Origin: Macrostomum lignano
Taxonomy: Eukaryota
Assembly: GCA_002269645.1 (NCBI GenBank)
Contig: NIVC01000732.1
Coordinates: forward strand, 62,001 to 126,000
Reading direction: 5' to 3'
DNA length: 64,000 nucleotides
Shown here in pieces: positions 3,001 to 62,058 of the stretch (position 1 is its first letter; each line of letters opens with the position of its first letter). The notes below the pieces were generated by a model that was given only the letters and a program-made list of their open reading frames with translations, ran no database searches and was not told where the DNA came from. Made by a program: the position numbers and the translations under genes.

Positions 3001-6000
3001 GATTGATCTGGATTGACAGGTGCTAAACTGATTGATTGATCTGGATTGACAGGTGTTGAACTGATTGATTGGTCTGGATTGAAAGGCGCTAAACTGATTG
3101 ATTGAGCTGGATTGACAGGTGTTGAACTGATTGATTGGTCTGGATTGACAGGCGCTAAACTGATTGATTGAGCTGGATTGACAGGTGTTGAACTGATTGA
3201 TTGGTTTGGATTGACAGGTGCTAAAAACTGATTGATTGGTTTGGATTGACAGGCGCTAAACTGATTGATTGAGCTGGATTGACAGGTGTTGAACTGATTG
3301 ATTGGTTTGGATTGACAGGTGCTAAAAACTGATTGATTGGTTTGGATTGACAGGTGCTAAAAACTGATTGATTGGTCTGGATTGACAGGTGCTAAACTAA
3401 TTGATTGGTCTGGATTGACAGGTGCTAAAAACTGATTGATTGGTCTGGATTGACAGGTGCTAAACTGATTGATTGGTCTGGATTGACAGGTGCTAAAAAC
3501 TGATTGATTGGTTTGGATTGACAGGTGCTAAACTGATTGATTGGTTTGGATTGACAGGTGCTAAACTGATTGATTGGTCTGGATTGACAGGTGCTAAACT
3601 GATTGATTGATCTGGATTGACAGGCGCTAAACTGATTGATTGAGCTGGATTGACAGGTGTTGAACTGATTGATTGGTCTGGATTGAAAGGCGCTAAACTG
3701 ATTGATTGAGCTGGATTGACAGGTGTTGAACTGATTGATTGGTCTGGATTGACAGGCGCTAAACTGATTGATTGAGCTGGATTGACAGGTGTTGAACTGA
3801 TTGATTGGTTTGGATTGACAGGTGCTAAAAACTGATTGATTGGTTTGGATTGACAGGTGCTAAACTGATTGATTGGTCTGGATTGACAGGTGCTAAACTG
3901 ATTGATTGGTCTGGATTGACAGGTGCTAAACTGATTGATTGATCTGGATTGACAGGCGCTAAACTGATTGATTGAGCTGGATTGACAGGTGTTGAACTGA
4001 TTGATTGGTCTGGATTGAAAGGCGCTAAACTGATTGATTGAGCTGGATTGACAGGTGTTGAACTGATTGATTGGTCTGGATTGACAGGCGCTAAACTGAT
4101 TGATTGAGCTGGATTGACAGGTGTTGAACTGATTGATTGGTTTGGATTGACAGGTGCTAAAAACTGATTGATTGGTTTGGATTGACAGGTGCTAAAAACT
4201 GATTGATTGGTCTGGATTGACAGGTGCTAAACTAATTGATTGGTCTGGATTGACAGGTGCTAAACTGATTGATTGGTCTGGATTGACAGGTGCTAAAAAC
4301 TGATTGATTGGTCTGGATTGACAGGTGCTAAACTGATTGATTGGTCTGGATTGACAGGTGCTGAACTGATTGATTGGTCTGGATTGACAGGTGCTAAACT
4401 GATTGATTGGTCTGGATTGACAGGTGCTGAACTGATTGATTGGTCTGGATTGACAGGTGCTAAACTGATTGATTGGTCTGGATTGACAGGTGCTAAACTG
4501 ATTGATTGGTCTGGATTGACAGGTGCTAAAAACTGATTGATTGGTCTGGATTGACAGGTGCTAAACTAATTGATTGGTCTGGATTGACAGGTGCTAAACT
4601 GATGCATTAGCCTTGACTCTTGATTGACAGCAGATTTAATAACATAAAGCTCACAGTCTTGATTTCGTTATAAGCCAGACTGAATCGCTCAAGTGTTTTG
4701 GACCACCGATCGCCGCCGTTGAGATTGACAGAGTCGATTCTATTGTGCGACAGGTCGATTTCTCTGAGCACAGCGGAGGCCCAGTTCTTTGGCGACGGGA
4801 ACTGATCGATGCTGTTGTAGCTGAGGTCGATGCTTTTTAGTCTGCAAGTTGTAAAAATTTTCATAGTTTCGCATATTACAGAGGTAATCAATGAATTTTA
4901 GTAGGTTTCTGAACAGCCGATGTTCCAAGGACAACTAAGAATTGTCCCAAGGTTATTGGGCTTCTAAGGATTTCCCAAGGTCATTAGGGTTAGGGATTTC
5001 CTGAGTTCATTACGGTTAGGGATTTCCCAAGATCATTAGGGTTAGAGATGTTCCAAGGTCATTAGGGTTAGGGATTTTCTGAGTTCATTACGGTTAGGGA
5101 TTTCCTGAGTTCATTACGGTTAGGGATTTCCCAAGATCATTAGGGTTAGAGATGTTCCAAGGTCATTAGAGTTAGTGATATCCTAAGGTTATTACGATTA
5201 GGGATTTTCCAAGGTCATCAAGGTTAGGGATGCGCCAAGGTCATTAGAGGCAGGATTTTCCACGGCATAAAAATTGGAATTCGCAAGGTCATTAGTTATT
5301 TTGTAATTTTGAAAAGACTGTACGGTTTATCAACGGCACGATTTTTTAACGTCATGATCGGTAGGATTTTTCATGTTCATTACGCTCGTAGATGCAGGAT
5401 TCCATAAAATCAATTTATTTTCAGAATCCAGAGGTCACTCTCACTCAAGTCTAGCTCTCTCTAAGGCCACTAGAAACGATATTTCCCTATCTCAATCAAG
5501 TCTCACATGCTAAGCTCGAGTACAAATGAAGGCACTGATAGCGGGTCCTTGGCCCCAAGCTGGTTGTTGCTGAGTCGCACGGTGCTCAGGTGGTAGAGCT
5601 TGCGCGATGTCTCAGGCGTCGGTAGAACTTCTGCAATGGAGGCAAATTATGGGGGGCGCCATTTCATTTGATTGGGGCGCCATTTCATTTGATTGGGGCG
5701 CCATTTCATTTGATGGGGCCGCCATTTCATTTAATGGGGCGCCATTTTATTTGACTGGGGCGCCATTTCATTTGATGGGGGCGCCATGGACGAAATTTTG
5801 GAAATAAAACGCACCGTTTGAGACAGTCAACTTTACCAGTGCAAGACAAACTGCCTCTCACCCAACTCAAGCAAGACAAACTGTCTCTCACCCAACTCTA
5901 GCAAGACAAACTGTCTCTCACCCAACTCTAGCAAGACAAACTGTCTCTCACCCAACTCAAGCAAGACAAACTGTCTCTCACCCAACTCAAGCAAGACAAA

Positions 6001-9000
6001 CTGTCTCTCACCCAACTCAAGCAAGACAAACTGTCTCTCACCCAACTCAAGCAAGACAAACTGTCTCTCACCCAACTCCAGCAAGACAAACTGTCTCTCA
6101 CCCAACTCAAGCAAGACAAACTGTCTCTCACCCAACTCAAGCAAGACAAACTGTCTCTCACCCAACTCCAGCAAGAAAAACTGTCTCTCACCCAACTCAA
6201 GCAAGACAAACTGTCTCTCACCCAACTCCAGCAAGACAAACTGTCTCTCACCCAACTCCAGCAAGACAAACTGTCTCTCACCCAACTCCAGCAAGACAAA
6301 CTGTCTCTCACCCAACTCAAGCAAGACAAACTGTCTCTCACCCAACTCCAGCAAGACAAACTGTCTCTCACCCAACTCAAGCAAGACAAACTGTCTCTCA
6401 CCCAACTCCAGCAAAACAAACTGTCTCTCACCCAACTCAAGCAAGACAAACTGTCTCTCACCCAACTCAAGCAAGACAAACTGCCTCTCACCCAACTCTA
6501 GCAAGACAAACTGTCTCTCACCCAACTCAAGCAAGACAAACTGCCTCTCACCCAACTCAAGCAAGACAAACTGTCTCTCACCCAACTCAAGCAAGACAAA
6601 CTGTCTCTCACCCAACTCCAGCAAGACAAACTGTCTCTCACCCAACTCAAGCAAGACAAACTGTCTCTCACCCAACTCAAGCAAGACAAACTGTCTCTCA
6701 CCCAACTCAAGCAAGACAAACTGTCTCTCACCCAACTCAAGCAAGACAAACTGTCTCTCACCCAAATCCAGCAAGAAAAACTGTCTCTCACCCAACTCTA
6801 GCAAGACAAACTGTCTCTCACCCAACTCTAGCAAGACAAACTGTCTCTCACCCAACTCAAGCAAGACAAACTGTCTCTCACCCAACTCCAGCAAGACAAA
6901 CTGTCTCTCACCCAACTCAAGCAAGACAAACTGTCTCTCACCCAACTCCAGCAAGACAAACTGTCTCTCACCCAACTCAAGCAAGACAAACTGTCTCTCA
7001 CCCAACTCAAGCAAGACAAACTGTCTCTCACCCAACTCAAGCAAGACAAACTGTCTCTCACCCAACTCCAGCAAGACAAACTGTCTCTCACCCAACTCAA
7101 GCAAGACAAACTGTCTCTCACCCAAATCCAGCAAGACAAACTGTCTCTCACCCAACTCCAGCAAGACAAACTGTCTCTCACCCAACTCTAGCAAGACAAA
7201 CTGTCTCTCACCCAAATCCAGCAAGAAAAACTGTCTCTCACCCAACTCTAGCAAGACAAACTGTCTCTCACCCAACTCTAGCAAGACAAACTGTCTCTCA
7301 CCCAACTCAAGCAAGACAAACTGTCTCTCACCCAACTCCAGCAAGACAAACTGTCTCTCACCCAACTCAAGCAAGACAAACTGTCTCTCACCCAACTCCA
7401 GCAAGACAAACTGTCTCTCACCCAACTCAAGCAAGACAAACTGTCTCTCACCCAACTCAAGCAAGACAAACTGTCTCTCACCCAACTCTAGCAAGACAAA
7501 CTGTCTCTCACCCAACTCAAGCAAGACAAACTGTCTCTCACCCAACTCTAGCAAGACAAACTGTCTCTCACCCAACTCAAGCAAGACAAACTGTCTCTCA
7601 CCCAACTCCAGCAAGACAAACTGTCTCTCACCCAACTCAAGCAAGACAAACTGTCTCTCACCCAACTCAAGCAAGACAAACTGTCTCTCACCCAACTCCA
7701 GCAAGACAAACTGTCTCTCACCCAACTCAAGCAAGACAAACTGTCTCTCACCCAACTCAAGCAAGACAAACTGTCTCTCACCCAACTCAAGCAAGACAAA
7801 CTGTCTCTCACCCAACTCCAGCAAGACAAACTGTCTCTCACCCAACTCAAGCAAGACAAACTGTCTCTCACCCAAATCCAGCAAGACAAACTGTCTCTCA
7901 CCCAACTCCAGCAAGACAAACTGTCTCTCACCCAACTCTAGCAAGACAAACTGTCTCTCACCCAAATCCAGCAAGAAAAACTGTCTCTCACCCAACTCTA
8001 GCAAGACAAACTGTCTCTCACCCAACTCTAGCAAGACAAACTGTCTCTCACCCAACTCAAGCAAGACAAACTGTCTCTCACCCAACTCCAGCAAGACAAA
8101 CTGTCTCTCACCCAACTCAAGCAAGACAAACTGTCTCTCACCCAACTCCAGCAAGACAAACTGTCTCTCACCCAACTCAAGCAAGACAAACTGTCTCTCA
8201 CCCAACTCAAGCAAGACAAACTGTCTCTCACCCAACTCAAGCAAGACAAACTGTCTCTCACCCAACTCCAGCAAGACAAACTGTCTCTCACCCAACTCAA
8301 GCAAGACAAACTGTCTCTCACCCAACTCAAGCAAGACAAACTGTCTCTCACCCAACTCAAGCAAGACAAACTGTCTCTCACCCAACTCAAGCAAGACAAA
8401 CTGTCTCTCACCCAACTCAAGCAAGACAAACTGTCTCTCACCCAACTCCAGCAAGACAAACTGTCTCTCACCCAACTCAAGCAAGACAAACTGTCTCTCA
8501 CCCAACTCAAGCAAGACAAACTGTCTCTCACCCAACTCAAGCAAGACAAACTGTCTCTCACCCAACTCAAGCAAGACAAACTGTCTCTCACCCAACTCCA
8601 GCAAGACAAACTGTCTCTCACCCAACTCCAGCAAGACAAACTGTCTCTCACCCAACTCCAGCAAGACAAACTGTCTCTCACCCAACTCCAGCAAGACAAA
8701 CTGTCTCTCACCCAACTCCAGCAAGACAAACTGTCTCTCACCCAACTCCAGCAAGACAAACTGTCTCTCACCCAACTCCAGCAAGACAAACTGTCTCTCA
8801 CCCAACTCCAGCAAGACAAACTGTCTCTCACCCAACTCAAGCAAGACAAACTGTCTCTCACCCAACTCCAGCAAGACAAACTGTCTCTCACCCAACTCAA
8901 GCAAGACAAACTGTCTCTCACCCAACTCAAGCAAGACAAACTGTCTCTCACCCAACTCCAGCAAGACAAACTGTCTCTCACCCAACTCCAGCAAGACAAA

Positions 9001-12000
9001 CTGTCTCTCACCCAACTCAAGCAAGACAAACTGTCTCTCACCCAACTCAAGCAAGACAAACTGTCTCTCACCCAACTCAAGCAAGACAAACTGTCTCTCA
9101 CCCAACTCCAGCAAAACAAACTGTCTCTCACCCAACTCAAGCAAGACAAACTGTCTCTCACCCAACTCAAGCAAGACAAACTGTCTCTCACCCAACTCAA
9201 GCAAGACAAACTGTCTCTCACCCAACTCCAGCAAGACAAACTGTCTCTCACCCAACTCCAGCAAGACAAACTGTCTCTCACCCAACTCAAGCAAGACAAA
9301 CTGTCTCTCACCCAACTCTAGCAAGACAAACTGTCTCTCACCCAACTCAAGCAAGACAAATTGTCTCTCACCCAACTCAAGCAAGACAAACTGTCTCTCA
9401 CCCAACTCGTTGCACGAGGCGTCGAACTCCTCCAGATTGGTCAAGCAGCCGAGGAACTCATCCGGCACAGCTCTGATGTAGTTGCTAGCCAAGCTGAGGC
9501 ATCGCAGTCGCTTCAACTGCAGCGGAGCCGGCTCCAGCTCGCCAATTCGATTGCCATTCAGCATGAGCCTCTCCAGGCCGTACAGGTTTTCTAGGAAACG
9601 CATCGGCACCGACCGGAGCTTATTACGCGACAGCAGCAGCTCGCGCAGGGTGAACACTGCGCCAACCCATTGTAGGCGCTCTTCGCGCAGCTCCACAATG
9701 TCGTTATCGGACACGTCCAAGTACTCGAGCCGGCAGCAGGTGATCAGCTCGTACGGGAACTCAATCAATCGATTGCCATTGAGCTCAACGTGAGCCAGAT
9801 TGCTCAGAAACTGGAACACACCCTGCGGCAGGCGCGTCAACTTATTATTAGCCAACGATAGGCGATTCAGAAATGCCAGTGACACTTGAAGGTCAATGTC
9901 GGCAGCGATACAGGCCAGCGAGTCCACGTCCGGGATGCAGTTGGCCGACAGGTCGATCAGGCGCAACTGCTCCGGGCGGGCTGACGGCTTGAAGGCGCCG
10001 ATGTGGACAGCTGTGTTCGACCGCAGCTGCCGCGCCCGCGGGTCTCGCAGCAGTCGCCGATGCCGGCGCACTTTGACGACACTGTCGCTGTGGTCGCCAC
10101 CGCCGCAGCCGCCAGAGTCCTCTGAAGTTCCAGCTTCAAGCAGCAACCGTCGACCTCGATGCCGACCAGCGTCCTCGCTGAAATCGGTGGTCTCGTCGTC
10201 GAAGCATTCCTCGTCGCCACATATCGATTCATCTACCTCGTCGCCAATTTCGTCGTCATCGTCATCGTTGTCGTCGTCGACATCATCGACGTCGTAGTCG
10301 TCGTCATCGTCTTCGCCGTTGGGATTCTCAGAGACGGCAACAGCGGCGGAGGCGTCGCAGGCGGCAGCGTCGGCGTCGGCGCATCTGCAGGTCGGTTAGT
10401 TGAGGAAAACAAATATTGTTGGGCGACATCGTCCCGCACACACGACCAGCACCGAGGCGATTCTGCCCATTCCGCAGACAAACGCGCCAATGCTGTAACC
10501 ACTCACACACGCTCACACAGGCTGCGAATCGCACGACAAGCGCACAAAATGTTACACGAGGGTCAAACCTTGCTCACCTGAGCAGGTAGCTGCCACGCCG
10601 AACCTCCAAGTTGTTGCCGGCAGCAGGCTGCTGCTCCACCTGTCGATGCCGCGGTCGCTGCTTGGGATGCGGCAGGCGTAGTCTGGGATCCAGCTGGCTG
10701 TAGGGCAGATTAGAGCTGGACAGAGTGCTCTGATAGAACTCCTGCAGCTCGCCTTCAACTGGCTGGAATTGAATGTCGCTTGTCGAGTAGCTGGCTGGGC
10801 CGGACGGCACCTCCGAGGTGGAAGCGGCGGCAGCGACGCCGGCTACAGCCGCGTCGGGATCTGACCGGATCGTGTCGCTACGCTTGCGGAACTGCTCAAT
10901 CTGGCTGGCGAGCACCTCGGGCGCGAGGGTTCGGCGACGATCTCGACTGTTGCTTTTGGCCGACGCGTTCGAGGCGGAGGCTGCTGAGGAGTCGGCGCCG
11001 TCAGAGAGTTTCTTCTTGCCCGGTTGTGTGTCCTGAAAATAGTTTTTCTGCTGCAAATGTTTTAAGCCTGTAGATCTGAGTTTTCTCATAGCTGTGGGCA
11101 AAAGCTCAGCTCAAACTGCCGTGGTTTGTGCCCCGTTTGTCTCTCCCTGCGTCTCCCTCTCCGTCTCTCCCTGCGTCTCCCTCTCCGTCTCTCCCTGCGT
11201 CTCCCTCTCCGTCTCCCTCTCCGTCTCTCCCTGCGTCTCCCTCTCCGTCTCTCCCTGCGTCTCCCTCTCCGTCTCTCCCTGCGTCTCCCGCTCCGTCTCT
11301 CCCTGCGTCTCCCGCTCCGTCTCTCCCTGCGTCACTCCCTCCGTCTCCTTCCCCGTCTCTCCGAGTCTCCCCCTGTCTCCCTCTCCGTCACTGTCTCCCC
11401 TCACTCACTGTCTCCCTCTCCGTCACTGTCTCCCCTCACTCACTGTCTCCCCTCCCTCACTGTCTCCCCTCCCTCACTGTCTCCCCTTCCTCACTGTCTC
11501 CCCTCCCTCACTGTCTCCCCTTCCTCACTATCTCCCCTTCCTCACTATCTCCCCTCCCTCACTGTCTCCCCTCCCTCACTGTCTCCCCTTCCTCACTGTC
11601 TCCCCTCCCTCACTGTCTCCCCTTCCTCACTGTCTCCCCTCCCTCACTGTCTCGCTTCCCTCACTGTCTCCCCTTCCTCACTATCTCCCCTCCCTCACTA
11701 TCTCCCCTCCCTCACTGTCTCCCCTCTCTCACTGTCTCCCTTCTCTCACTGTCTCCCCTCTCTCACTGTCTCCCCTCTCTCACTGTCTCCCCTCTCTCAC
11801 TGTCTCCCCTCTCTCACTGTCTCCCTTCTCTCACTGTCTCCCTTCTCTCACTGTCTCCCCTCTCTCACTGTCTCCCCTCTCTCACTGTCTCCCCTCTCTC
11901 ACTGTCTCCCCTCTCTCACTGTCTCCCCTCCTCACTATCTCCCTTCCCTCACTGTCTCCCCTTCCTCACTGTCTCCCCTCACTCACTGTCTCCCCTCTCT

Positions 12001-15000
12001 CACTATCTCCCTTCTCTCACTGTCTCCCCTCTCTCACTGTCTCCCTTCTCTCACTGTCTCCCCTCTCTCACTGTCTCCCCTCTCTCACTGTCTCCCTTCT
12101 CTCACTGTCTCCCCTCTCTCACTGTCTCCCCTCTCTCACTGTCTCCCCTCTCTCACTGTCTCCCCTCTCTCACTGTCTCCCCTCTCTCACTGTCTCCCCT
12201 CTCTCACTGTCTCCCCTCTCTCACTGTCTCCCCTCTCTCACTGTCTCCCCTCTCTCACTGTCTCCCCTCCTCTCGCAGAGCCCCTGGCTAAGTGGCCACC
12301 CCAACCAACCTGCTTCTGCCGACTCTGCTGCTGCTTGTCTCCGTCGCCGCGAACCTCGCCAAGCGAGTCGGCTCGCTTAAAAAACGGCGGCATCCGACCC
12401 AGTAGCAGCGACACCATCGACCCGCGTCGACTCATGCCGCCTCCGCCACTCTGTTGTTGCTGCTGACGACGCCCATCATCAACAATATCAAGCTGCTGTT
12501 GACTGCCAGTCTCAGACGGCTGGCTCGTCTTTCCCGGGTTGGACGCCGAAGTCCACTGTGCCAGTCGATAACGTTCGGGCAAGATATCGTCTAGGCCAAT
12601 GACAGCTCCCGCGCTTCCGGCGCCTGCACCGGCCGCCGGTGCACCCGAGGTGGACGCCGACGATGCCGCAGTTGAGGCGCGACGCCTTGGCGAGTTAAGG
12701 CCGCCGCCGTTGCTATGGTGGGATCTGGCGGCCTCTCTAATCAGCTTGCTGACCTTGCGAATGCGGACTTCAGTGAGCTCTGCAGTGGGGGATATTTTTG
12801 GGGGCAAATGATGAGATTGTAAAATAGATCAGAGGGGAGGAAATGGGATCAGAGTGGGGAAAGGGGATCAGATGGGAGGAAATGGGATCAGAGGGGAGGA
12901 AATGCGATCAGAGGGGAGGAAATGCGATCAGAGGGGAGGAAATGGGATCAGAGTGGAGGAAAGGGGATCAGAGGAGAGGAAATGGGATCAGAGGGGAGGA
13001 AATGGGATCAGAGGGGAGGAAATGCGATCAGAGGGGAGGAAATGGGATCAGAGGGGAGGAAGGGGGATGAGAGGGGAGGAAAGGGGATCAGATGGGAGGA
13101 AAGGGGATCAGATGAGAGGAAATGGGATCAGATGGGAGGAAATGGGATCAGATGGGAGGAAAGGGGATCAGAGGGGAGGAAATGGGATCAGAGGGGAGGA
13201 AATGGGATCAGAGGGGAGGTAATGGGATGAGAGGGGAGGAAATGGGATCAGAGGGGAAGAAAGGGGATCAGAGGGGAGGAAAGGGAATCAGAGGGGACGA
13301 TATTTGTTAGAAAGAGAAAATGAAGCAACTTGGCAAACCCACCTTGTTCAGGTGTCCGAGGCTTAATCACCGGGTCAAGCCAGCGAGCTTGGAAGCTTTG
13401 CAGCTTCAGGTTGCACCAGGTGATGGAGCCAAAGCTGCCCTCTGCACAAGGGTTAGAGTAGGAAGAAATATAAACGACCCTGTCCCGGTTGTACATACGC
13501 ACAGTTAAACCCCTAACCAAAATAAAAACATGCCCAAAAATCCCATCAACAATAATCCTCCCAACCACTGATAAAACTCTTTTTTCGATAAAGACTCCTT
13601 ACCGCCAACTGTACACACGCTCGCGATAAAAACTTCTACCCCCTCCCTAATGTACACACCCCAGCGGTAAAATCTTCTACCCCCAATGTACGAACACCCA
13701 CGATAAAAACTTCTACCCCCAATGTACACAAGCCAGCGATAAAAACTTCTACCCCCGATGTACACACACCCGCGATAAATTTTTTTTACCTCTAATTTAC
13801 ACACATTAGCGATAAACCAATTATGTACACACTCCAATAAATCATCTTTATCCTCAGATGTGCCCTAACCGACTTAAAACTCACGCTTATAATATCCCAA
13901 ATGCTTGAGCAGCAATCCAGTAACCATATCGGTGCCTAGAGTCAAACTCTTCTCCAAAGCCGATTGAGTATTCACTGCGCCCTTCTCCAGCAGACAGTAA
14001 ACAGTGTCCAGCAGATCGCTGGGACTCTGGAAGCTAGCCAAAGCCAGACAGATAAGCGAGCTGGAGTCTTCAGCCGACACTGCATTGGGATTAGCACCCA
14101 GCTCTAGCAGGCACCTGGCCAATTTGCTGTTCCCATTGCGAATTGCTCTGAGCAGCGCGGCGTCTTTTTGGCCACGGCTGAGTACCAGCTCGAGCAGGCA
14201 CTCGGCAGCCAGCCTGAGCAGGCCGCGCTTCTTCAAGCTGGTTCGTACAATGTGAAACAGACAGTCGAACGCGTCGTTCTCCACTAGGCAAGGTGCGAAT
14301 CGCGGCGATCGGCGGCATAGCAACAGGGCGGCTACGCAGCCTTCGGCTTGCACGCCCAGCGCGTTGGGAAATGCTCGAAGGGCGCCGACCACTGCCGAGC
14401 AGACGCGATCGACTACTTCTCCGTGATGATGCTGCTGTTGATTGTCTGCTGCACTGGAGACTGCAAACTCTTTCGGCAGCAGTTGCAGCAAAATTAAACC
14501 GCACTTTTGTACAACGAATGAGTCTCTGTTGATTGTTGAGGTTGGGAATGCGAAATGGCGATAGTAAAGTAAAGCTTTTAAAAACACTATATCTACGAAA
14601 TATGTTTATCACAAACATGCTTATAAATAACTCTCTACCCCAATGTACACATGCTTATAAATAACTCTCTACCCCAATGTACACATGCTTATAAATAACT
14701 CTACCCCTAATGTACACATGCTTATAAATAACTCTCTACCTCAATGTACACATGCTTATAAATAACTCTCTACCCCCAAATGTACACATGCTTATAAATA
14801 ACTCTCTACCTCAATGTACACATGCTTATAAATAACTCTCTACCTCAATGTACACATGCTTATAAATAACTCTCTACCCCAATGTACACATGCTTATAAA
14901 TAACTCTACACCAATGTACACATGCTTAGAAATAACTCTCTACACCAATGTACACATGCTTATAAATAACTCTCTACACCAATGTACACATGCTTATAAA

Positions 15001-28500: not shown

Positions 28501-31500
28501 AGAGGGCCTTGCTGAATATAAAGACAAAACTGAAGCTGAAATTTGCAGTCAAAGCATTATGCTCAGGCAATGAGATAATTTGCCTACCTTTCCCCCTACT
28601 CTCTCGTAGTAGATAGTCGCGTACTCGTCCATCCACACGTCAGCCAGTCGCACAGAATTCTTTTTCAACACGCTGCCGGTGCCCCAACTGTAGGGCGAGC
28701 GCTTCCGAAAGATGTGACCAACAATGGAGCAGGGCACAATCTCCAGGGTGCCGCCGCACATCCAAATTTTAAAGCTAATCTCTAAATTCTCTCCGCCCCA
28801 GATGTCGAATCCGGGATCATAGCTGCCCAGATGGGCAAAGTATTTCCTGGAAATGGAGAACAGTCCGCCAGCCATGGTGGGGCTGCGAACCGGATCGATC
28901 CTACTCAACCGGCGCTTCCTGTCGCGCTCGGGCACAACGTGCCAATTGAATTGTAAATTCCAGTCGAATCCGCCAACACTCATCGAGTCTAAATTAGTTG
29001 CCGTGGACATTGCCAAGGTGCTATCGCTGATCACTTCGATAGTTGGCGTCACAACGTTTGTCCAGTTGAGCGCGATCCGATGCAGCAGCGGCTCGAGCCA
29101 GCCTGTGGCGCATTCGCAATGCGAATCCAGGAATGTCAGCACAGTGCCTTCGGCTTTGCGGGCTCCCATTAACCTGGCGCGGATTAGGCCTTCGCGCTTG
29201 GCTGCCCGAAGGATTCGAACCTGAGTGATGCAAATTAGGCTACTTTTAGTAGTGTGAGAAGAATTATATTCAACTTTACATTGTATAACTTTACAACTAC
29301 TTAACTTGAAGGTCAGGGGTTCGATTCTTGATCCCACTAGAACAATTTGTGTCCTTGAGCAACACACTGAACTCTGCATTGCTTCAGTTCACCCAGCTGT
29401 AAAATGGGTGCCAGCATTAGCTGAGGTAATTAAAGGTGTGCGTGGCGACCCCCCACAGTCCTTGGACTGAACAGCCGCACGCAGCCTTCAGATCAGGTGA
29501 CAATCACACGCTAATCTAATCAGTAATCAGGTGACAATCACACACTAATCTAATCAGTGATCAGGTGACAATCACACACTAATCTAATCAGTGATCAGGT
29601 GACAATCACACACTAATCTAATCAGTGATCAGGTGACAATCACACACTAATCTAATCAGTGATCGGGTGACAATCACACACTAATCTAATCAGTGATCAG
29701 GTGACAATCACACACTAATCTAATCAGTGATCGGGTGACAATCACACACTAATCTAATCAGTGATCAGGTGACAATCCCACACTAATCTAATCAGTGATC
29801 AGGTGACAATCACACACTAATCTAATCAGTGATCAGGTGAAAATCACACACTAATCTAATTAGTGATCAGGTGAAAATCACACACTAATCTAATCAGTGA
29901 TCAGGTGAAAATCACACACTAATCTAATTAGTGATCAGGTGACAATCACACACTAATCTAATCAGTGATAAGATGACAATCACACACTAATCTAATCAGT
30001 GATCAGGTGAAAATCCCACACTAATCTAATCAGTGATCAGGTGACAATCACACACTAATCTAATCAGTGATCGGGTGACAATCACACACTAATCTAATCA
30101 GTGATCAGGTGAAAATCACACACTTATCTAATCAGTGATAAGATGACAATCACACACTAATCTAATCAGTGATCAGGTGACAATCACACACTAATCTAAT
30201 CAGTGATCAGGTGACAATCACACACTAATCTAATCAGTGATCGGGTGACAATCACACACTAATCTAATCAGTGATCAGGTGACAATCACACACTAATCTA
30301 ATCAGTGATCGGGTGACAATCACACACTAATCTAATCAGTGATCAGGTGACAATCACACACTAATCTAATCAGTGATCAGGTGACAATCACACACTAATC
30401 TAATCAGTGATCAGGTGAAAATCACACACTTATCTAATTAGTGATCAGGTGAAAATCACACACTAATCTAATCAGTGATCAGGTGACAATCACACACTAA
30501 TCTAATCAGTGATCAGGTGACAATCACACACTAATCTAATCAGTGATCAGGTGACAATCACACACTAATCTAATCAGTGATCAGGTGACAATCACACACT
30601 AATCTAATCAGTGATCGGGTGACAATCACACACTAATCTAATCAGTGATCAGGTGACAATCACACACTAATCTAATCAGTGATCGGGTGACAATCACACA
30701 CTAATCTAATCAGTGATCAGGTGAAAATCACACACTAATCTAATTAGTGATCAGGTGACAATCACACACTAATCTAATCAGTGATAAGATGACAATCACA
30801 CACTAATCTAATCAGTGATCAGGTGAAAATCCCACACTAATCTAATCAGTGATCAGGTGACAATCACACACTAATCTAATCAGTGATCGGGTGACAATCA
30901 CACACTAATCTAATCAGTGATCAGGTGAAAATCACACACTTATCTAATCAGTGATAAGATGACAATCACACACTAATCTAATCAGTGATCAGGTGACAAT
31001 CACACACTAATCTAATCAGTGATCAGGTGACAATCACACACTAATCTAATCAGTGATCGGGTGACAATCACACACTAATCTAATCAGTGATCAGGTGACA
31101 ATCACACACTAATCTAATCAGTGATCGGTGACAATCACACACTAATCTAATCAGTGATCAGGTGACAATCACACACTAATCTAATCAGTGATCAGGTGAC
31201 AATCACACACTAATCTAATCAGTGATCAGGTGAAAATCACACACTTATCTAATTAGTGATCAGGTGAAAATCACACACTAATCTAATCAGTGATCAGGTG
31301 ACAATCACACACTAATCTAATCAGTGATCAGGTGACAATCACACACTAATCTAATCAGTGATCGGGTGACAATCACACACTAATCTAATCAGTGATCAGG
31401 TGACAATCACACACTAATCTAATCAGTGATCGGGTGACAATCACACACTAATCTAATCAGTGATCAGGTGACAATCACACACAAATCTAATCAGTGATCA

Positions 31501-52352: not shown

Positions 52353-55300
52353 ATGCAGTTTCAAGAGCCCACTGAAGCGCAAAAAAAATTAAGTATTCGT
52401 CTGTATCAAGAATTATGTCAGGCAGGCTTTACTACAGAGCGCGTGCGTCTACAATCCCTGCTTGTTGACTACATTGAAAACCTCTACCAAAACCTGTATG
52501 ATAAGGAGCAATATAAATGGCTTATTGCTGGTAGCTTTGGAGACGTTTGGGGCAACAATCTATTCACGCTGGATGGCAGAACTGATGAGCATGAGTCTGA
52601 TGTTGATTGGACCTGTGTCATGCGTCAATCAAAGTTTCACTTCAAAGAAACTTGTAAATGCCAAAACGTGGACGAAAGATACTTGCTGTCCATCGATAAG
52701 GTCCACGAAGGGCATGTTGAATTCAACTTTGAGCGTAAGTAATTAGTTTCATGTGTTAAAAATATACAGTTAGAGTTCATCCTTAGTCTTTACAACTTTG
52801 CAATTTTATAAGTGACGTTAGCCTTCCAGACGTTTTACCAGATTAACTGCCCAGCTTCGTAATTCACCTGTCAATAAAGTATGTCTAAAGTCTACTGGCA
52901 AGTATTTTTAGTATAGAGCTTTAACCCTGGATCAGCCCTGGGGGGGGGGGGGGGCTCTGCCGCAGTGGGGCACTTTCCTAGGGCACTTTCGTGGACCCGA
53001 GATACCCTCCTCGGAAGACCGAGAACCAGTGAATTGGGCCCTGACATAAGCCAGGGGAGAGCAGAAGGACCTCAAGCCTACGGTACAAGACACCGCCAAC
53101 CCAATGTTAGTGGAATCAGGGACGGTGCTAGGACTGAATCCACCCAGGCCATCCCCCCAGCTAGCGAGTCTTTGGGAGTGCGCAGAAAAATTGGAGAGCG
53201 AAATGCTTGGGTTACTACTGAAAGCGGTCCGAGTGAGGAGTTACTCCTAAACCTGCGGAAATGGCTTGACTATTGGAGCGAGTCTGAGCAGCTTATTACC
53301 AAGAGCGATCCTAATACAGGGTCTTGGCCCCCTGAAGGTCTCGAGCCTCAAGGCTTTTCACTACCCAGCTCTATTTTGGAGTGAGTCTGGAAGGCTTTTA
53401 TCCGAGGGGGAGACTCTAGGCGGATATTGCAACACCTCTATTGCTACCAACCCAAGGGCATCGCCTATCCAGCTCATTATTGGGGGCCAGGCCAAGGGGT
53501 CGGGAGAGAGGCACCCGGGGCAAGAGAACTCCGGACTCAACCGGTTGTCCCCGGTACGGGACGAACATCCTTCCCAGGACATCAATCCACTGTCAGGATG
53601 AGAGCCAGAGACACGCAAGCAGGGACCTTCAGCAGGAGCCAGGAGATGGACCCGAGGACAGGGCAAGATGGACCGGGCGAGGGCAGAGCTCATAACTCCA
53701 AATAATTGGATGGCTACTAATGGCCGGGTAAAAGAATAAAAGCAAGGGAATAGGGATAAAACCGCGCTGGGATGCCAGCCCAGAAAAAAAAGGCAGAAAG
53801 GAGGAGCACCATAGCCCTAAAGCAGGCAGCTTGCCGACCTGCAACCCGGGTGCTTAGCCTCGGGGCTGGCAGTCTACTGGGTCTACCGTGCACCTTTGTG
53901 AATTGGTCATTCTTTCCTGCAGGGCGGGTACGACCGGGGGGCTCAGTCCCGTCCTAGCCACACTGCAGTCCAGAGAACCTACTCACTCCGGGCACCACCC
54001 CCCCTAAACCAAGGCCGAGGGCCGAAATTCTATTGGTTAGAAAAAATAGGGTATATTTTTAAACAGGCACAGCCCCTCCGGGGCGGACCCTTAGAAATTG
54101 GACTAAGCCAATCGGATTGCGCACAACCCTAGAAACGCCGCCAGAAAGGACAGCCAGGGTAAAAACAGTCAGAGACACCCAACCCGGGGAGAAAGGGGGC
54201 AGCATAAGGACATAAGTTATTGCTTGTACTTGTAACTCGTGACTGAATTTAACAAACGCGGGCTGGAACGTGTAAACCCATTCTAAACATAGTTCAAATT
54301 TGTTTTTGCTCTTTAAGATAATTTTAAGAAGCAAATTATTCCTTCTTTTTTTGTCCGAATTCAAAGCGTAGATTGAATTTTTGTTTTTAGAACTACGAGA
54401 GCCAGCTGAACCGCACGACGGCATCGGATTGCGGCCAAAAGTTGACGAGTGCACAGCTTATTTTTGTTGCAGCGTACCCAGTGAAATTCTCTGCGATCAC
54501 GTCAATCTCGTTTTCAACAAGGAAGAGGCTGCGGGTGAAATGACACTGATACAGGCGTCCCGGCCTGGCCACGAGAACACGGAACTGAGGTTTGGATTCT
54601 CTTTCTTCGAGAGGCGTCAAATTCGATCTCTTAATGTAATTCAAGGGCAGCTATTCCTTCTAATTAAATACTTCATCACTAATAAGTTCAACAAAGATGT
54701 GTTTGCTCTGAAGTCGTATCACGCAAAAACATTGCTGTTTTTCGTACTTCGCGACTTTGGTAAGGATGCTGACATCTGGAAAGATGAAAAAAATTTAATA
54801 GGCTTGCTGCTTTATTCCTTCGATTTCCTGGTCGAAAAGTTGGACGAGCTAAAATATAGGAGTTGCAATGAGTGCGGATTTCACGCGGCAATGCCTAGCT
54901 TTTTTCTCAAGGAATGCTTTATCTACTTTCACAAAAAAGTATTTTCCAATTGTCCGCACGATTCGCTTATCCGGGTCATCAAAGATGTTAAAGAAAATAT
55001 CGATTCTCACATTTCTGAGTACATTAATCTGCTCAGGCCAATCAAAGATGAACAGCAAGGAATGATTTTTCATCCTTATGTTCTGTTTCCGACTAGGTTG
55101 ACTCTGCAATTTTGTAAGCCAGCAAGCGCTGACAACTTGTATCTGAGAATGTACCATTGTCTCCAGGAGCTGACTGTGCTGACTGCGGACCGTAAAATTG
55201 ATTTTTTGCGTCACGTAGAGTCGTTACCACCGAATGCGTTTACTGCCTGTCTCTGTCTGAAAGTTATGACACACCTAAAGTTTGATGACAAAGATGCAGC

Positions 55301-56489
55301 TGTGGAATTGTTGCGCAAACATCAGTTTCACTGTGCGCAATATTCAGTGCCGTTTCGCAACATTTCGGAAAAGGAATCCAAAGAACCCGCCAAATTTGAT
55401 GAGCTAAAGGCAGAAATTGAATCGACTGACACTGCCTGGTGCTTTGCCTTCACCTACGACCAGATTCGACCATTTAACTTTGAGTTCTTAAACGAAGAAC
55501 TGTACGATCATTGCATAACGCGTTCGAAAACCTACCCTGTTGATGTCGTTGTCGATTTCAACTGCTTGACGCGATTATTCTATTTTCTATTATGCGAGGA
55601 CCAAAGCGTTCTGGAAAAGTGGAAGAAAGATTTGATTGCCAAGAAAGCTCCGCTATCGGAAGTTTACCTGTGTCACTACTTGAAAACTTCGCATCTGCCA
55701 CTGTCGGAACAGCTGCCAAAAATTTTACGCCGCTTAAATGAATCAATCAAAAAGAACGTCTATGACAGAAACTTTCTTACTAGATTAGTGGAAAGATTCG
55801 ATTCGGAACGTGGAAAAATCTTTTGCGAATGGCTCGATGCTAATATTGAGTCTGCTGAATTTGTTACACTCTACTGCGCCTCCATTGTGTCTGACAAAGC
55901 CTTACTCTCCAAAGCAGTGGAAAGAGCATTCGAAATATCTAATAAAGCACTTCATTATCAGGATTTCAAAATGCTCTTGGAGATGCAGCAGCGTCTGTGC
56001 AAGTTTGACCACGACTATTTGGACATCTGGTGGGCTCGCCTGACTCAGTTAGAAAAATGGAACTTATTGAACGTGGAAGAGATCATTTCGTTTCTCGAAT
56101 CAGCTAATGTAGAAAAATCAGAAAGGCATCTTAATTCTGCTCTTGATCTTATTCAAAATTCTGAAAAAGTGCTGCGATTTCTTAAACTGAAAGACTTCCA
56201 GCTACTGATGCAAGCTCGAAAAAGACTTGTTGAACTGGACTCTGGTTACCTGAATACCTGGCTGAGTGATTTTCATACTCGAGTAAATGATCCCGAGAAT
56301 TCGCATCGAGTGCCGTTTTTTATTGTCGAATTACTTTCGCTAAGCAACTGTTTGAAAGCGAGTCACAATCCACCTGACGTCAAGCTCTTCACCAAACTTA
56401 CTGAGAAGATATTAGGACTGGGAGGATTAAGCAAATCCGACGCTGCTCGAGTGAAGAGAGTAAAGTTCACTCTGTCTAAACTTGGCTAA
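52353..56489 (+). CDS. Mab-21/cGAS-like nucleotidyltransferase (cGLR-like) with long C-terminal helical extension, ~826 aa. Exons 52353-52734 and 54391-56489; an additional upstream exon via the CAG acceptor at ~52328 is possible.
   Basis: NTase signature IAGS...SDVD in exon 1 and a third acidic residue in KVDEC. Mab-21 C-lobe motifs LRFGFSFFERR, LLIKYF, LKSYHAKTLLFF, W-x-n-L, MPSFFL. Phase-1 intron GAGC|GTAAGT ... TTTTTAG|AACTA joins the 147-aa and 702-aa ORFs. Confidence 0.85.
52921..54163. mobile_element. Unclassified GC-rich insertion in the cGLR intron (possible piggyBac-like ends)
   Basis: Abrupt GC shift. Left end TTAA|CCCTGG followed by a long G run; right end CCAGGG|TAAA. No recognisable transposase ORF. 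Confidence 0.4.
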
Positions 56490-59400: not shown

Positions 59401-60062
59401 AATTTACACATATAGCGATAGATAATAAGCATTTGAACAGTGGTGCGTGCGCAAATTCTAGTGTACATACTAAACTGGGCGTGCGGCGCAGCTATGTACA
59501 TTAAGGTTGTTTGAAGCTGAACCCTCTCTCCCCCAGTCCCGACCCCCCACCGCCGCCTTGGCCATGCCAGTTCAAATTGGGGTGCCGCGGGTTTTTTCTG
59601 GACAGAAGGCCCCCCTCCCCCTTGTTCATTTTAGGCGGCAGGATTGTAGATAATAATATAAGCCTCACAGTTTTAAACAACTTAAGTCTCAAGCCTGAAG
59701 CTTCAAATTCCAGAAAGAAGACTCCCTTACCCAAGTCCTTTTAGGACGAACGTACGCCTTTGACTTGGCCTTGGCTAACTCTGAATGGTAAAATTGCCTG
59801 CTTCTATATACCTTTGAGTAAAAACGTTCATTTTATTTTGAGTCCCACCGACACCGTACCTTGCCGAATACTCAAGACTGAGACGAGAGAATCGCGGCCA
59901 AGTTAAACACGGACGCACGAACTCGACTCAATTCTTCTTTCTAAACTAAGGACAGATAGACAGCTAGTGCGCAGATTGGGAAGGCTTGGCTTCAAAGAAA
60001 AAGAAACCCAAGTACTCCTATGCAGCAAGCAACGGTATTATAAAGAAGCAGCCGAGTACAAT

Positions 60063-62058
60063 ATGGACCCACTGCTGCCTAACTTTACTTCATTAGAGAA
60101 ATCCTACGACCAGCAACGGCGTGCTATTATCCAGCAAAAACCGCTGGAGGAAGACAACAATAATATTACTACTGATAATAGCAAGCAACCAGACCTTGCT
60201 ACTAGCAGCTGTGGCATGTCCGAATCCGACATTGTGGCTGCCACTCTGCGCTGCGTGCTCGTTGGCAACTCGGGCGTCGGCAAGTCGACCCTGCTGCGAT
60301 CGATTGCTGGCCTGCCGCCTCTGACCGAAGCCAATAACACTGCTAATGGTACTACTGGTTGTCGGGCACTGGCGCAGTCCGTCGCTCTGATAGTGGACCT
60401 GCCAGCTGCTAAACGAGGCAAAGCCCGAAGTTCGGCATCGCCTGTTAAGGTGCAAATTCCTAATTATGCTTTTTTACTGTGATTTTAAACATTACTCGTA
60501 TCAGTTCTTTTTAGAACAGGTTCAGACACTGCTGACCCATCCTTGTAAAAGATTAGGACGCGACTAGATAAACTCCGACCCACGCGCCACCTGCGGCCCA
60601 CGACGCTTCTCTATCCGGCCCTCGGGTTCCTTTGAAAGGGGCGCTTTCATAAGCCCGAAATTTTACAATATAAAACAGAGGAACTTCATAAACCCGAAAT
60701 TTCACAAAGTCGAATGGTCGAAATCTATACGATATACAGGTATGTATCGGACTGTCTCTTCACTGCATTTCGACATTGCGAAAATTCGGGTTCATGAAAC
60801 GATCCCCCCTTTGAAACTTCACGCTCATGGTTCGTGTCTCTTCTCAGCTCTCTTCTCTCCTCTCCTCTCCCCTCTTTTTCTCTTGATCTTCTCTCAAGGT
60901 TAAAAACGTTTTCCAAACCCAGATTTAGTGTTAGGCACTGTATGTACCTGTAATTAATATGCAGGTCGTAGGTATACTCATTTTTAGCATATAGGAGGTC
61001 GTAGTAGGGGATTTTCAAAAGCTCAAAATTTCATTAGGTCTAAACTTTAAAACTTAGTTAAGTTCACGCGGTTGTCAAAGTCTTGCTAGCCACTTCCGCT
61101 GCTGTCGAATTTAAAAGCCCGTCAGTTGTTTCTGGCTTGTGCCATAGACTAGCCAGCATTCTCTGGGCTTTGCTCAACTCTGTGTCCAAATTAAAAGCCC
61201 GAAGTCCAAACTAGAACGCAAAAAGCTATATTATTGTGCCATAGACATTTGTGTCATTGACAAAGTGGGACAGAACAATCGGGCGTTAAATGTCATTAAC
61301 TGCCCGCTAATTTGCATTAAAGTAAGTTTAAAGCATTTAAGTCCTGCAAGCGGGCTTAAATGTAGTCTATGGCATTAAAAGGCAAGAATAAGTGCCCAGC
61401 GGGCACAAAGGTCATGGTACAATGCTAAAAAATGCACACTTCTTATCGATCGCTAAATAGAATTTTCCTGCGAAATTTTGCACGATTTGCAATGTAGCAT
61501 ATAAACTTGTATGCATCTATCGACGCCGCCACACTCCGCTATCTGCAGGTTCGCCTACGCCTAGAGGACACGCCCGGCTCTCATTCTATGGACCTGCTGC
61601 GGCCTCGTCTCTACGCTGACGCTGGCGCATTTCTACTATGCTTCTCAGCGTCGGAGACCAGCTCAGCGGAACAATTGGTCACCCGTTGGTTACCGGAGTT
61701 GGTGCGACACCAGTCTGGCGTGCCAATTCTTCTGCTAGCGATCCAGTCTGATCGGCAGCGAGTGCACAGGTCAGTCATGGCAAAGGCCAGTCGAGCAGCC
61801 GAGATAATCAGCAGTACATCTGGCATGTCAACAAGCAGTTTGTTGATGACCTGCTCCTCAACCAGATGGCAGCCGAATGGTCTGAATGAGACTCGACTGC
61901 TGACCCGACTAGCTGAACTGGCTGTTCGGCCACCGGCTGCGGCATCGTTAGTTGACGATTTGAACCCGATTAATACAGACGCGAATGTGCAGAATTACAA
62001 CTCGAAGAGGTCGATGTGCTGCTTCTTGACTCGCAGTTCAAGCCAGCAGGTTGGATGA
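60063..62058 (+). CDS. Divergent Rho-family small GTPase, ~298 aa. Exons 60063-60449 and 61549-62058; start codon uncertain (alternative Met near 60215).
   Basis: P-loop CVLVGNSGVGKSTLL. Exon 2: LRLEDTPG (G3), DLLRPRLYADAGAFLLCFS (switch II/Rho-like), LVTRWLPELVRHQSGVPILLLA. Phase-0 intron AAG|GTGCAA ... CTGCAG|GTT. Confidence 0.78.

Follow-up and report, generated by a model that had tools for sequence, protein, structure and literature searches.

A divergent cGAS-like receptor homologue of Macrostomum lignano with a conserved nucleotidyltransferase triad and a predicted helical tail

Does a locus of the flatworm Macrostomum lignano that carries cGAS-type active-site motifs encode an intact cGAS-like receptor (cGLR), and is its product likely to be an enzyme? 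The locus lies on the plus strand at positions 52353-56489 of the window, the 64,000-nt stretch of contig NIVC01000732.1 (assembly GCA_002269645.1, positions 62,001 to 126,000 of the forward strand) that was analysed. Positions below are those of the window, and residue numbers are those of the spliced protein of 826 amino acids (aa). Our analysis showed that cGLR homologues have expanded greatly in M. lignano and that this gene, which lacks ankyrin repeats, is a divergent one among them. It is almost certainly a true homologue of the cGLR/Mab-21 family, and the locus as a whole is probably best explained as an intact cGLR-family gene whose product may carry out ligand-controlled synthesis of a nucleotide signal.

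Two open reading frames (ORFs) lie 1.66 kb apart on the plus strand of this interval. Joining position 52734 to 54391 in phase 1 gives an uninterrupted coding sequence of 2481 nt for 826 aa, with the start ATG at 52353 and the stop codon at 56487-56489. The parts of the gene are the following.

52353-52734, plus strand: exon 1 (residues 1-127 and base 1 of codon 128), identified by its ORF, its ATG and tblastn matches from paralogs; it encodes the N-terminal spine helices, strand 1 with the GS motif, a long loop and strand 2 with the DxD motif
52735-54390, plus strand: intron of 1656 nt, GTAAGT...TTTTTAG, with donor and acceptor also kept at L001
54391-56489, plus strand: exon 2 (residues 128-826 and the stop codon)

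Paralog proteins are collinear through the splice junction, across which the distance from the conserved GH to the conserved RP is 22 residues in both this protein and paralog P0004. The splice sites and the phase are also kept at L001, a second M. lignano copy of the gene. Because of this collinearity with the same spacing and this conservation at L001, we take the two-exon join as real. Judged from its sequence, 52353-56489 on the plus strand is an intact two-exon gene predicted to encode an 826-aa protein.

The motifs IAGS, SDVD, KVDEC and SYHxKT, which had been quoted in a preliminary description of the locus, were all confirmed, and the predicted active site is laid out as follows.

52530-52535, plus strand: G60-S61, the GS motif of the nucleotidyltransferase (NTase), aligned with G212-S213 of human cGAS (hcGAS) and preceded by Ala, not by Gln or Thr (IAGS)
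52536-52598, plus strand: the GS-to-DxD loop FGDVWGNNLFTLDGRTDEHES, 21 residues, with the family motif GWGN.L....GRT
52599-52607, plus strand: D83-V-D85, the predicted catalytic DxD (SDVD at 52596-52607), at the start of strand 2 as placed by the paralog model and aligned with hcGAS E225/D227
52638-52715, plus strand: H96, C101, C103 and H121 in the NTase lobe, 84-92% conserved in the family
54444-54446, plus strand: D146, the predicted third catalytic acid, in RPKVDEC; aligned with hcGAS D319 and placed in a central strand of the paralog model
54588-54611, plus strand: RFGFSFFE, aligned by hhalign with hcGAS 376-383 RLSFSHIE, with R194, S198 and E201 kept
54666-54731, plus strand: K220 through S236-Y237-H238-A-K240-T241 (SYHAKT at 54714-54731), in the helices of the Mab-21 C-lobe and aligned with hcGAS K414 and SSYHVKT
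54891-54905, plus strand: MPSFF, close to the end of the Mab-21 lobe, aligned with hcGAS NYFIPEF and including M295

For the conservation counts, family domains were aligned to a hidden Markov model, and the denominators differ by column. The GS motif is nearly invariant (G in 98/100 domains, S in 99/102), the DxD acids are D in 95/102 and 93/102 domains, and the third acid is D in 65/75. Of the 67 family domains that could be evaluated, 57 have the complete G-S/D/D/D set, as does the window gene. In the C-lobe, the K220 column holds K in 124/125 domains and the Y237 column Y in 117/126, and the window protein keeps the residues that hhalign aligned with hcGAS R376, S380, E383, K414, S435 and Y436. 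In that comparison a 4-sequence family profile was set against the catalytic domain of human cGAS; the C-lobe alone was aligned, over 105 columns, with a pairwise E-value of 0.007 and a probability of 5.5%. The alignment was used for residue correspondence only, and it agrees with the HMMER alignment to the cGAS chains in the PDB.

The spacing between GS and DxD had been described as atypical. The spacer is exactly 21 residues long, as had been noted, but this is not unusual in the family, in which it measures 20 aa in 92/100 domains and 21 aa in five, the window gene included. The corresponding loop of human cGAS has 11 aa, as against 20-21 in the M. lignano family.

The four His and Cys residues listed above, together with C153 and C154 (54465-54470), are conserved in 76-93% of family members and sit between the DxD strand and the strand of the third Asp. 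From the sequence, this cluster may be a metal site. It would lie elsewhere in the N-lobe than the Zn thumb of cGAS, whose segment falls into a 12-residue gap in the hhalign alignment.

A word-index homology search with the window protein returned five matches, all from M. lignano. The nearest database protein, P0001 (hypothetical protein BOX15_Mlig015042g1, 532 aa), is 92% identical, and four M. lignano paralogs were found at 29-37% identity, each with an N-terminal ankyrin array and one with a precomputed Mab-21_C match. We then used a profile of the shared core against 1.84 billion representatives of 50%-identity clusters, which gave 495 matches at E<=1e-3 and 81 at E<=1e-30. Ten of these matches were looked up. 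All 8 of the 8 strong ones were from M. lignano, in agreement with the earlier proposal of a lineage-specific protein; the weak ones were one Mercenaria clam protein and one unnamed ENA record, and they carry canonical Pfam Mab-21 and Mab-21_C domains. The family profile reaches such canonical proteins at about 1e-9 to 1e-11, and its best matches in the PDB, over the C-lobe, were cGAS (E 0.004) and cGLR1 (E 0.014). The gathering score of Mab-21_C is passed by paralogs P0002, P0014, P0021 and P0024 (27-31 bits against a cut-off of 24.1), and P0004 and P0012 fall just under it. DUF5917, the single Pfam match of the window protein, was sub-threshold and was rejected.

To describe the fold, we used a 48-row alignment to build an AlphaFold2 model of the core of P0004, a paralog that shares 30% identity with the window protein. 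The model had a mean predicted local distance difference test (pLDDT) score of 90.6 and a predicted template modelling (pTM) score of 0.92 over 581 residues. A Foldseek comparison with the PDB gave 43 matches at E<=1e-3, and all among the 50 matches listed had a Mab-21 or CD-NTase fold. The best were human and mouse cGAS (E 3e-7), followed by Sp-cGLR1, MAB21L1, MB21D2 and MiD51, and a bacterial CD-NTase was listed at E 4.8e-3; target-normalised template modelling (TM) scores were 0.44-0.56 over ~340-420 alignment columns. In the model, the GS motif closes strand 1 and is followed by a confident 20-residue loop (10-residue blocks with mean pLDDT of 93-95), strand 2, which is long, starts with the DxD motif, and a central strand carries the third Asp. 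The layout, as modelled, is the Pol-beta NTase arrangement; we infer that the three acids converge from the topology of the model and its superposition on cGAS, not from measured coordinates. The Mab-21-fold, cGAS-like protein with a GS/DxD/D triad that had first been proposed was supported, both by the triad read in the sequence and by a paralog model that matches cGAS best.

Published cGLRs provide a second line of comparison. Li et al. 2023 defined them by an active-site motif, h[QT]GS [X8-20] [DE]h[DE]h [X50-90] h[DE]h, by homology across both lobes and by an AlphaFold match. The window protein has the cGLR catalytic residues G60-S61, D83-V-D85-W and V-D146-E at columns that are 87-98% conserved; its second motif spacer, of 58, is in range, and the family spacer of 20 residues falls inside the X8-20 of the published motif. 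Its homology extends over the NTase core and the C-terminal helix bundle in full-length alignment to members on the list of Li et al. 2023. Table S3 of that study gives five M. lignano proteins, nos. 89-93 (PAA86972.1, PAA45980.1, PAA57558.1, PAA93208.1 and PAA68676.1), as cloned predicted cGLRs. By eye, P0024 agrees with the PAA45980.1 construct save for one residue, and P0054 agrees with PAA57558.1; comparison with the window protein gave 177 bits for P0024 and 95 bits for P0054. In nos. 89-91 the residue before GS is M, L or F, so the curation was not strict on [QT]. The window gene was not found in those tables of Li et al. 2023 that were examined, and M. lignano does not appear in the cGLR/STING count table. 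As other members had already been cloned as predicted cGLRs, the family to which the suggested lineage-specific invertebrate sensor belongs is not a new discovery.

The window gene and the M. lignano cGLRs of Li et al. 2023 have in common the pattern GS[FY]..GWG..L....G.....D.D with its ~20-aa loop, RPA.D, LRVS.SF.E, QGQLF..K, LK.YHAKT, CMPHFF and a post-Mab-21 domain with FHPF.L.P. In contrast to them, the window gene has a loop of 21 instead of 20 residues, a Gly for the Ser aligned with hcGAS S378 and an extra helical tail of 235 aa that is in no paralog, and no N-terminal ankyrin array was found for it; neither tblastn with 171 family proteins nor a rough ankyrin (ANK) regular expression revealed any ankyrin exon upstream of the gene or any other paralog within the window. 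Compared with cGAS, Sp-cGLR1 (8gjy) and Drosophila cGLR1, it shares, as judged from the paralog model, the bilobal Mab-21 NTase fold and the GS, [DE]x[DE] and [DE] elements on equivalent strands; however, structure-based sequence identity is 12-17%, and the window protein has ~500 extra residues after the Mab-21 lobe relative to cGAS. The non-enzymatic Mab-21 proteins MAB21L1 and MiD51/MiD49, as well as MB21D2, also have this fold (Foldseek E 5e-6 to 1e-3), and the window protein differs from them in keeping the full acidic triad and GS. Ankyrin- and TPR-fused cGLRs are shown in Fig. 1C of Li et al. 2023, and the M. lignano paralogs are ANK-cGLR fusions, whereas the window protein has its tail at the C-terminus, where Pfam gave neither a TPR nor an ANK match and model confidence was low.

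The alignment with cGAS stops near MPSFF...IYF (residues 295-307). The preliminary description had treated what follows as a Leu-rich, helical and uncharacterised extension of ~450 aa with recurring segments. We found two distinct parts, the second of which contains a pair of repeats.

54996-55778, plus strand: family-shared C-terminal domain (residues ~330-590) of helices and short strands, aligned with all full-length paralogs
55779-56486, plus strand: gene-specific tail, predicted to be helical (residues 591-826, ~235 aa), whose sequence matches P0001 only
55944-56033, plus strand: internal repeat copy A (residues 646-675)
56175-56264, plus strand: second copy, B, of the internal repeat (residues 723-752), offset from copy A by 77 residues

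About 260 aa of the extension are therefore a domain shared by the family, and it is the last ~235 aa that are specific to this gene. The equivalent of residues ~330-590 forms one body with the core in the paralog model (pTM 0.92), and most of its 10-residue blocks have a mean pLDDT >85, with a few dips to 51-80; no Pfam or PDB sequence relative of this domain was found. Leucine makes up 14.7% of residues 330-826, as the helical, Leu-rich description implied, and the tail is all-helical in a model of exon 2 (block pLDDT mostly 53-66, rising to 70-81 at the end), but residues ~330-590 are mixed alpha/beta. The recurring segments are genuine. The two quoted ones correspond to residues 651-674 and 728-751 and are identical at 9/24 positions; the ungapped BLOSUM62 score of the repeat pair is 60, compared with maxima of 25-31 in five shuffles, and its gapped local score is 63 against 26.6 +/- 4.8 (z = 7.5). 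Beyond this one pair, no internal repeat in the extension exceeded the shuffle maxima, and the extension is not repeat-like overall. A TPR identity of the tail was rejected, as Foldseek returned only weak TPR- or solenoid-like matches (E >0.001, TM <=0.29, root mean square deviation >19 A). As modelled, the tail appears to be an orphan helical module with one duplicated segment.

The second copy of the gene clarifies the public annotation. P0001 spans residues 295-826 of the window protein only. Its locus, L001, lies on contig NIVC01001096.1 of GCA_002269645.1; its collinearity with the window extends for 16 kb or more, with 86-98% identity, and the public model occupies L001 8001-9599. Both splice sites (donor GTAAGT, acceptor TTTTTAG) are kept in this copy, as are the ATG, the 382-nt exon 1 (L001 6490-6871, 96% identical) and exon 2, in an intact frame of 825 aa, and its intron is 632 nt long compared with 1656 nt in the window. 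The BOX15_Mlig015042g1 model begins at the internal M295, so that exon 1 is left out together with the opening 166 codons of exon 2. Since L001 holds an intact two-exon frame of 825 aa, the public model is truncated and its catalytic half is missing, so that screens by active-site motif would miss the gene.

Comparison of the window gene with L001 gave a synonymous divergence (dS) of 0.12 and a ratio of nonsynonymous to synonymous divergence (dN/dS) of 0.46 over the whole gene, distributed as follows.

residues 1-240 (catalytic half): dN/dS 0.25-0.30
residues 241-295: dN/dS 0.79, with dS up to 0.39
residues 296-826 (shared domain and tail): dN/dS ~0.5

The lowest dN/dS of the gene was found in the catalytic half, and the gene is under purifying selection. 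Divergence between the copies peaks at residues 241-295 (54729-54893; dS 0.39, dN 0.31), and the next 295 codons have a dS of 0.05; upstream non-coding DNA is 96-98% identical and exon 2 93%. From this pattern, part of the Mab-21 C-lobe appears to be mosaic or to have undergone gene conversion.

If the protein is an enzyme, the most likely mechanism would be ligand-controlled synthesis of a nucleotide signal, as in other cGLRs. Residues ~1-320 would form a cGAS/Mab-21-type NTase, with a spine helix and a Pol-beta-like lobe (G60-S61, D83/D85, D146) and with a helical C-lobe carrying R194, E201, K220 and Y237. If it works as cGAS, Drosophila cGLR1 and Sp-cGLR1 do, ligand binding away from the active site would reorder the GS loop, and two nucleoside triphosphates would then be joined by the enzyme to give an oligonucleotide signal, either cyclic or linear. 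Regulation or partner binding may fall to the C-terminal domain and the tail, which would stand in for the paralogs' ankyrin arrays. We rate an active nucleotide-signal synthase as plausible but somewhat short of probable. The innate-immune sensor role first proposed, with cyclic-dinucleotide synthesis and signalling to STING, is putative.

Several observations weigh against this interpretation. When the two exons and the spliced protein were scanned against Pfam at E up to 10, the window protein itself matched neither Mab-21 (PF03281) nor Mab-21_C (PF20266), so that the Pfam check envisaged at the outset was answered by the paralogs P0002, P0014, P0021 and P0024 and not by the protein; a PDB sequence search with it gave chance-level matches only. 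The check by AlphaFold and Foldseek was likewise split: the P0004 core matched cGAS and Sp-cGLR1, but the fold evidence rests on that paralog, with its 30% identity, and a model of exon 2 only, which is without strands 1 and 2, had no cGAS match by Foldseek. The literal motif of Li et al. 2023 is missed twice, by the Ala before GS and by the X21 spacer. V65 replaces a loop Gly that is 93% conserved in the family, and G196 occupies the column of hcGAS S378, in which Ser is found in 113/123 domains and Gly in the window gene alone; in L001 the Ser aligned with hcGAS S380 is gone as well. D516, Y553 and H556 are further non-conservative departures from strongly conserved family positions. These five departures and the Ser loss in L001 lower our confidence in an active enzyme. 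Li et al. 2023 obtained 15 active enzymes, from insects, anemones, molluscs, hydras and corals but none from a flatworm; that study stated that most platyhelminths are without cGLRs beyond Mab21-like proteins, earlier work reported the loss of cGAS and STING in flatworms, and a 2026 study found neither in Schmidtea. Literature searches yielded nothing on STING in Macrostomum, and no sequence search was aimed at it.

Some relatives of the gene are joined to caspases. P0012 (M. lignano PAA59752.1) combines a cGLR-like core and ankyrin repeats with a C-terminal caspase (Pfam Peptidase_C14, E 2.7e-25), P0155 (M. lignano PAA80948.1) is a caspase p20 protein by its UniRef name, and P0015 has caspase-like motifs, seen by eye only. 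The NTase triad is degenerate in P0012 (D,N,S) and P0015 (D,N,T). From their sequences, these three proteins look like direct sensor-effector fusions. We found no mention of caspase fusions in those supplements of Li et al. 2023 that were examined or in a literature search.

How far do other explanations account for the locus? The protein could be a non-catalytic scaffold or adaptor of Mab-21 fold, like MiD51 or MAB21L1, that binds a nucleotide or a partner and signals via its C-terminal domain and tail. The Ser-to-Gly change at the S378-aligned column (Ser in 92% of the family) and a negative published screen make this a serious rival, though we consider it unlikely. MAB21L1 and MiD51 are among the close structural matches of the paralog model, a Val stands at the 93%-conserved loop Gly, and the degenerate triads of the caspase-fused members (D,N,S and D,N,T) indicate that the family uses the fold non-catalytically in places; none of the five family clones of Li et al. 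2023 was among the active enzymes. That screen, however, used only double-stranded DNA and poly I:C, and a negative result in it is not proof of inactivity. Against a scaffold there also stand the retention of G-S, D83, D85 and D146 together with the residues aligned with hcGAS R376, E383, K414 and Y436, and a catalytic half that is the most constrained part of the gene (dN/dS 0.25-0.30).

A second idea is that the gene is a redundant duplicate, intact yet drifting towards loss of function. The family is a very large set of paralogs, dN/dS reaches 0.46 overall and 0.79 at residues 241-295, five positions otherwise invariant in the family have changed non-conservatively, the tail has no relatives and public annotation covers the C-terminal 532 aa only, all of which would suit such a drift. 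Yet both copies keep an 825- or 826-codon frame, the ATG and both splice sites at a dS of 0.12, and dN/dS is well under 1 save in a single patch of 54 codons. As dS is raised there too (0.39), mosaicism or gene conversion fits the patch better than decay does, and we regard drift as very improbable. More improbable still, to the point of being scarcely credible, is that the two ORFs are not one gene, exon 1 being a separate fragment or relic and the true product a 532-aa protein starting at M295. The sole public model, P0001, does start there, but the paralogs are collinear over the junction and spaced identically there, L001 keeps the phase and both splice sites, and a start at M295 would fall near the end of the Mab-21 C-lobe, which is structurally senseless.

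The remaining features of the window lie outside the coding sequence of the gene.

52926-54323, strand not assigned: GC-rich stretch of ~1.4 kb in the intron, without alignment to L001, which has a different stretch of ~370 bp at this place

This stretch begins with a poly-G run and is present in a single copy in the window. It had no Rfam match, no second copy in the window and no counterpart in L001, and a search for terminal repeats gave none that were clear or convincing; it is probably a fragment of a mobile element. Elsewhere in the window, long ORFs at 5833-14587 on the minus strand contain leucine-rich repeats (LRR_8, E 3e-21) and an LRRK2-type ankyrin region (E 3e-9) in a segment of extreme GC skew, and they may belong to a ROCO/LRRK-like gene. 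An exon at 28549-29379 on the minus strand resembles a family-2 glycosyltransferase or a galactosyltransferase. Exons of a Ras/Roc-type small GTPase lie at 59967-62058 on the plus strand, and the GTPase gene was also called beside the orthologous L001 locus.

The broadest reading is that the Macrostomum family represents cGLR-derived sensing without canonical STING, marked by the conserved 20-21-aa GS loop, the His/Cys cluster of the N-lobe and the family's own C-terminal domain, with some members wired directly to a caspase effector and, in the present gene, an orphan helical tail binding ligand or partner in place of the ankyrin array. We consider it distinctly unlikely; if true, the cGAS fold would have given rise to a new arrangement of receptor and effector, and this in a phylum believed to be without the pathway. 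The value of the present gene lies in annotation and in the choice of constructs for biochemistry, and not in a new kind of system. The locus corrects a public gene model that holds 532 of 826 aa and lacks the catalytic half, and it adds to the family a member without ankyrin repeats and with an orphan tail. Across the family, two signatures are conserved, the long loop between GS and DxD and the domain after the Mab-21 lobe; the active site is usually intact and has been lost in the caspase-fused members. Against the usual account of flatworms, in which cGAS and STING have been lost, M. lignano stands as the documented exception.

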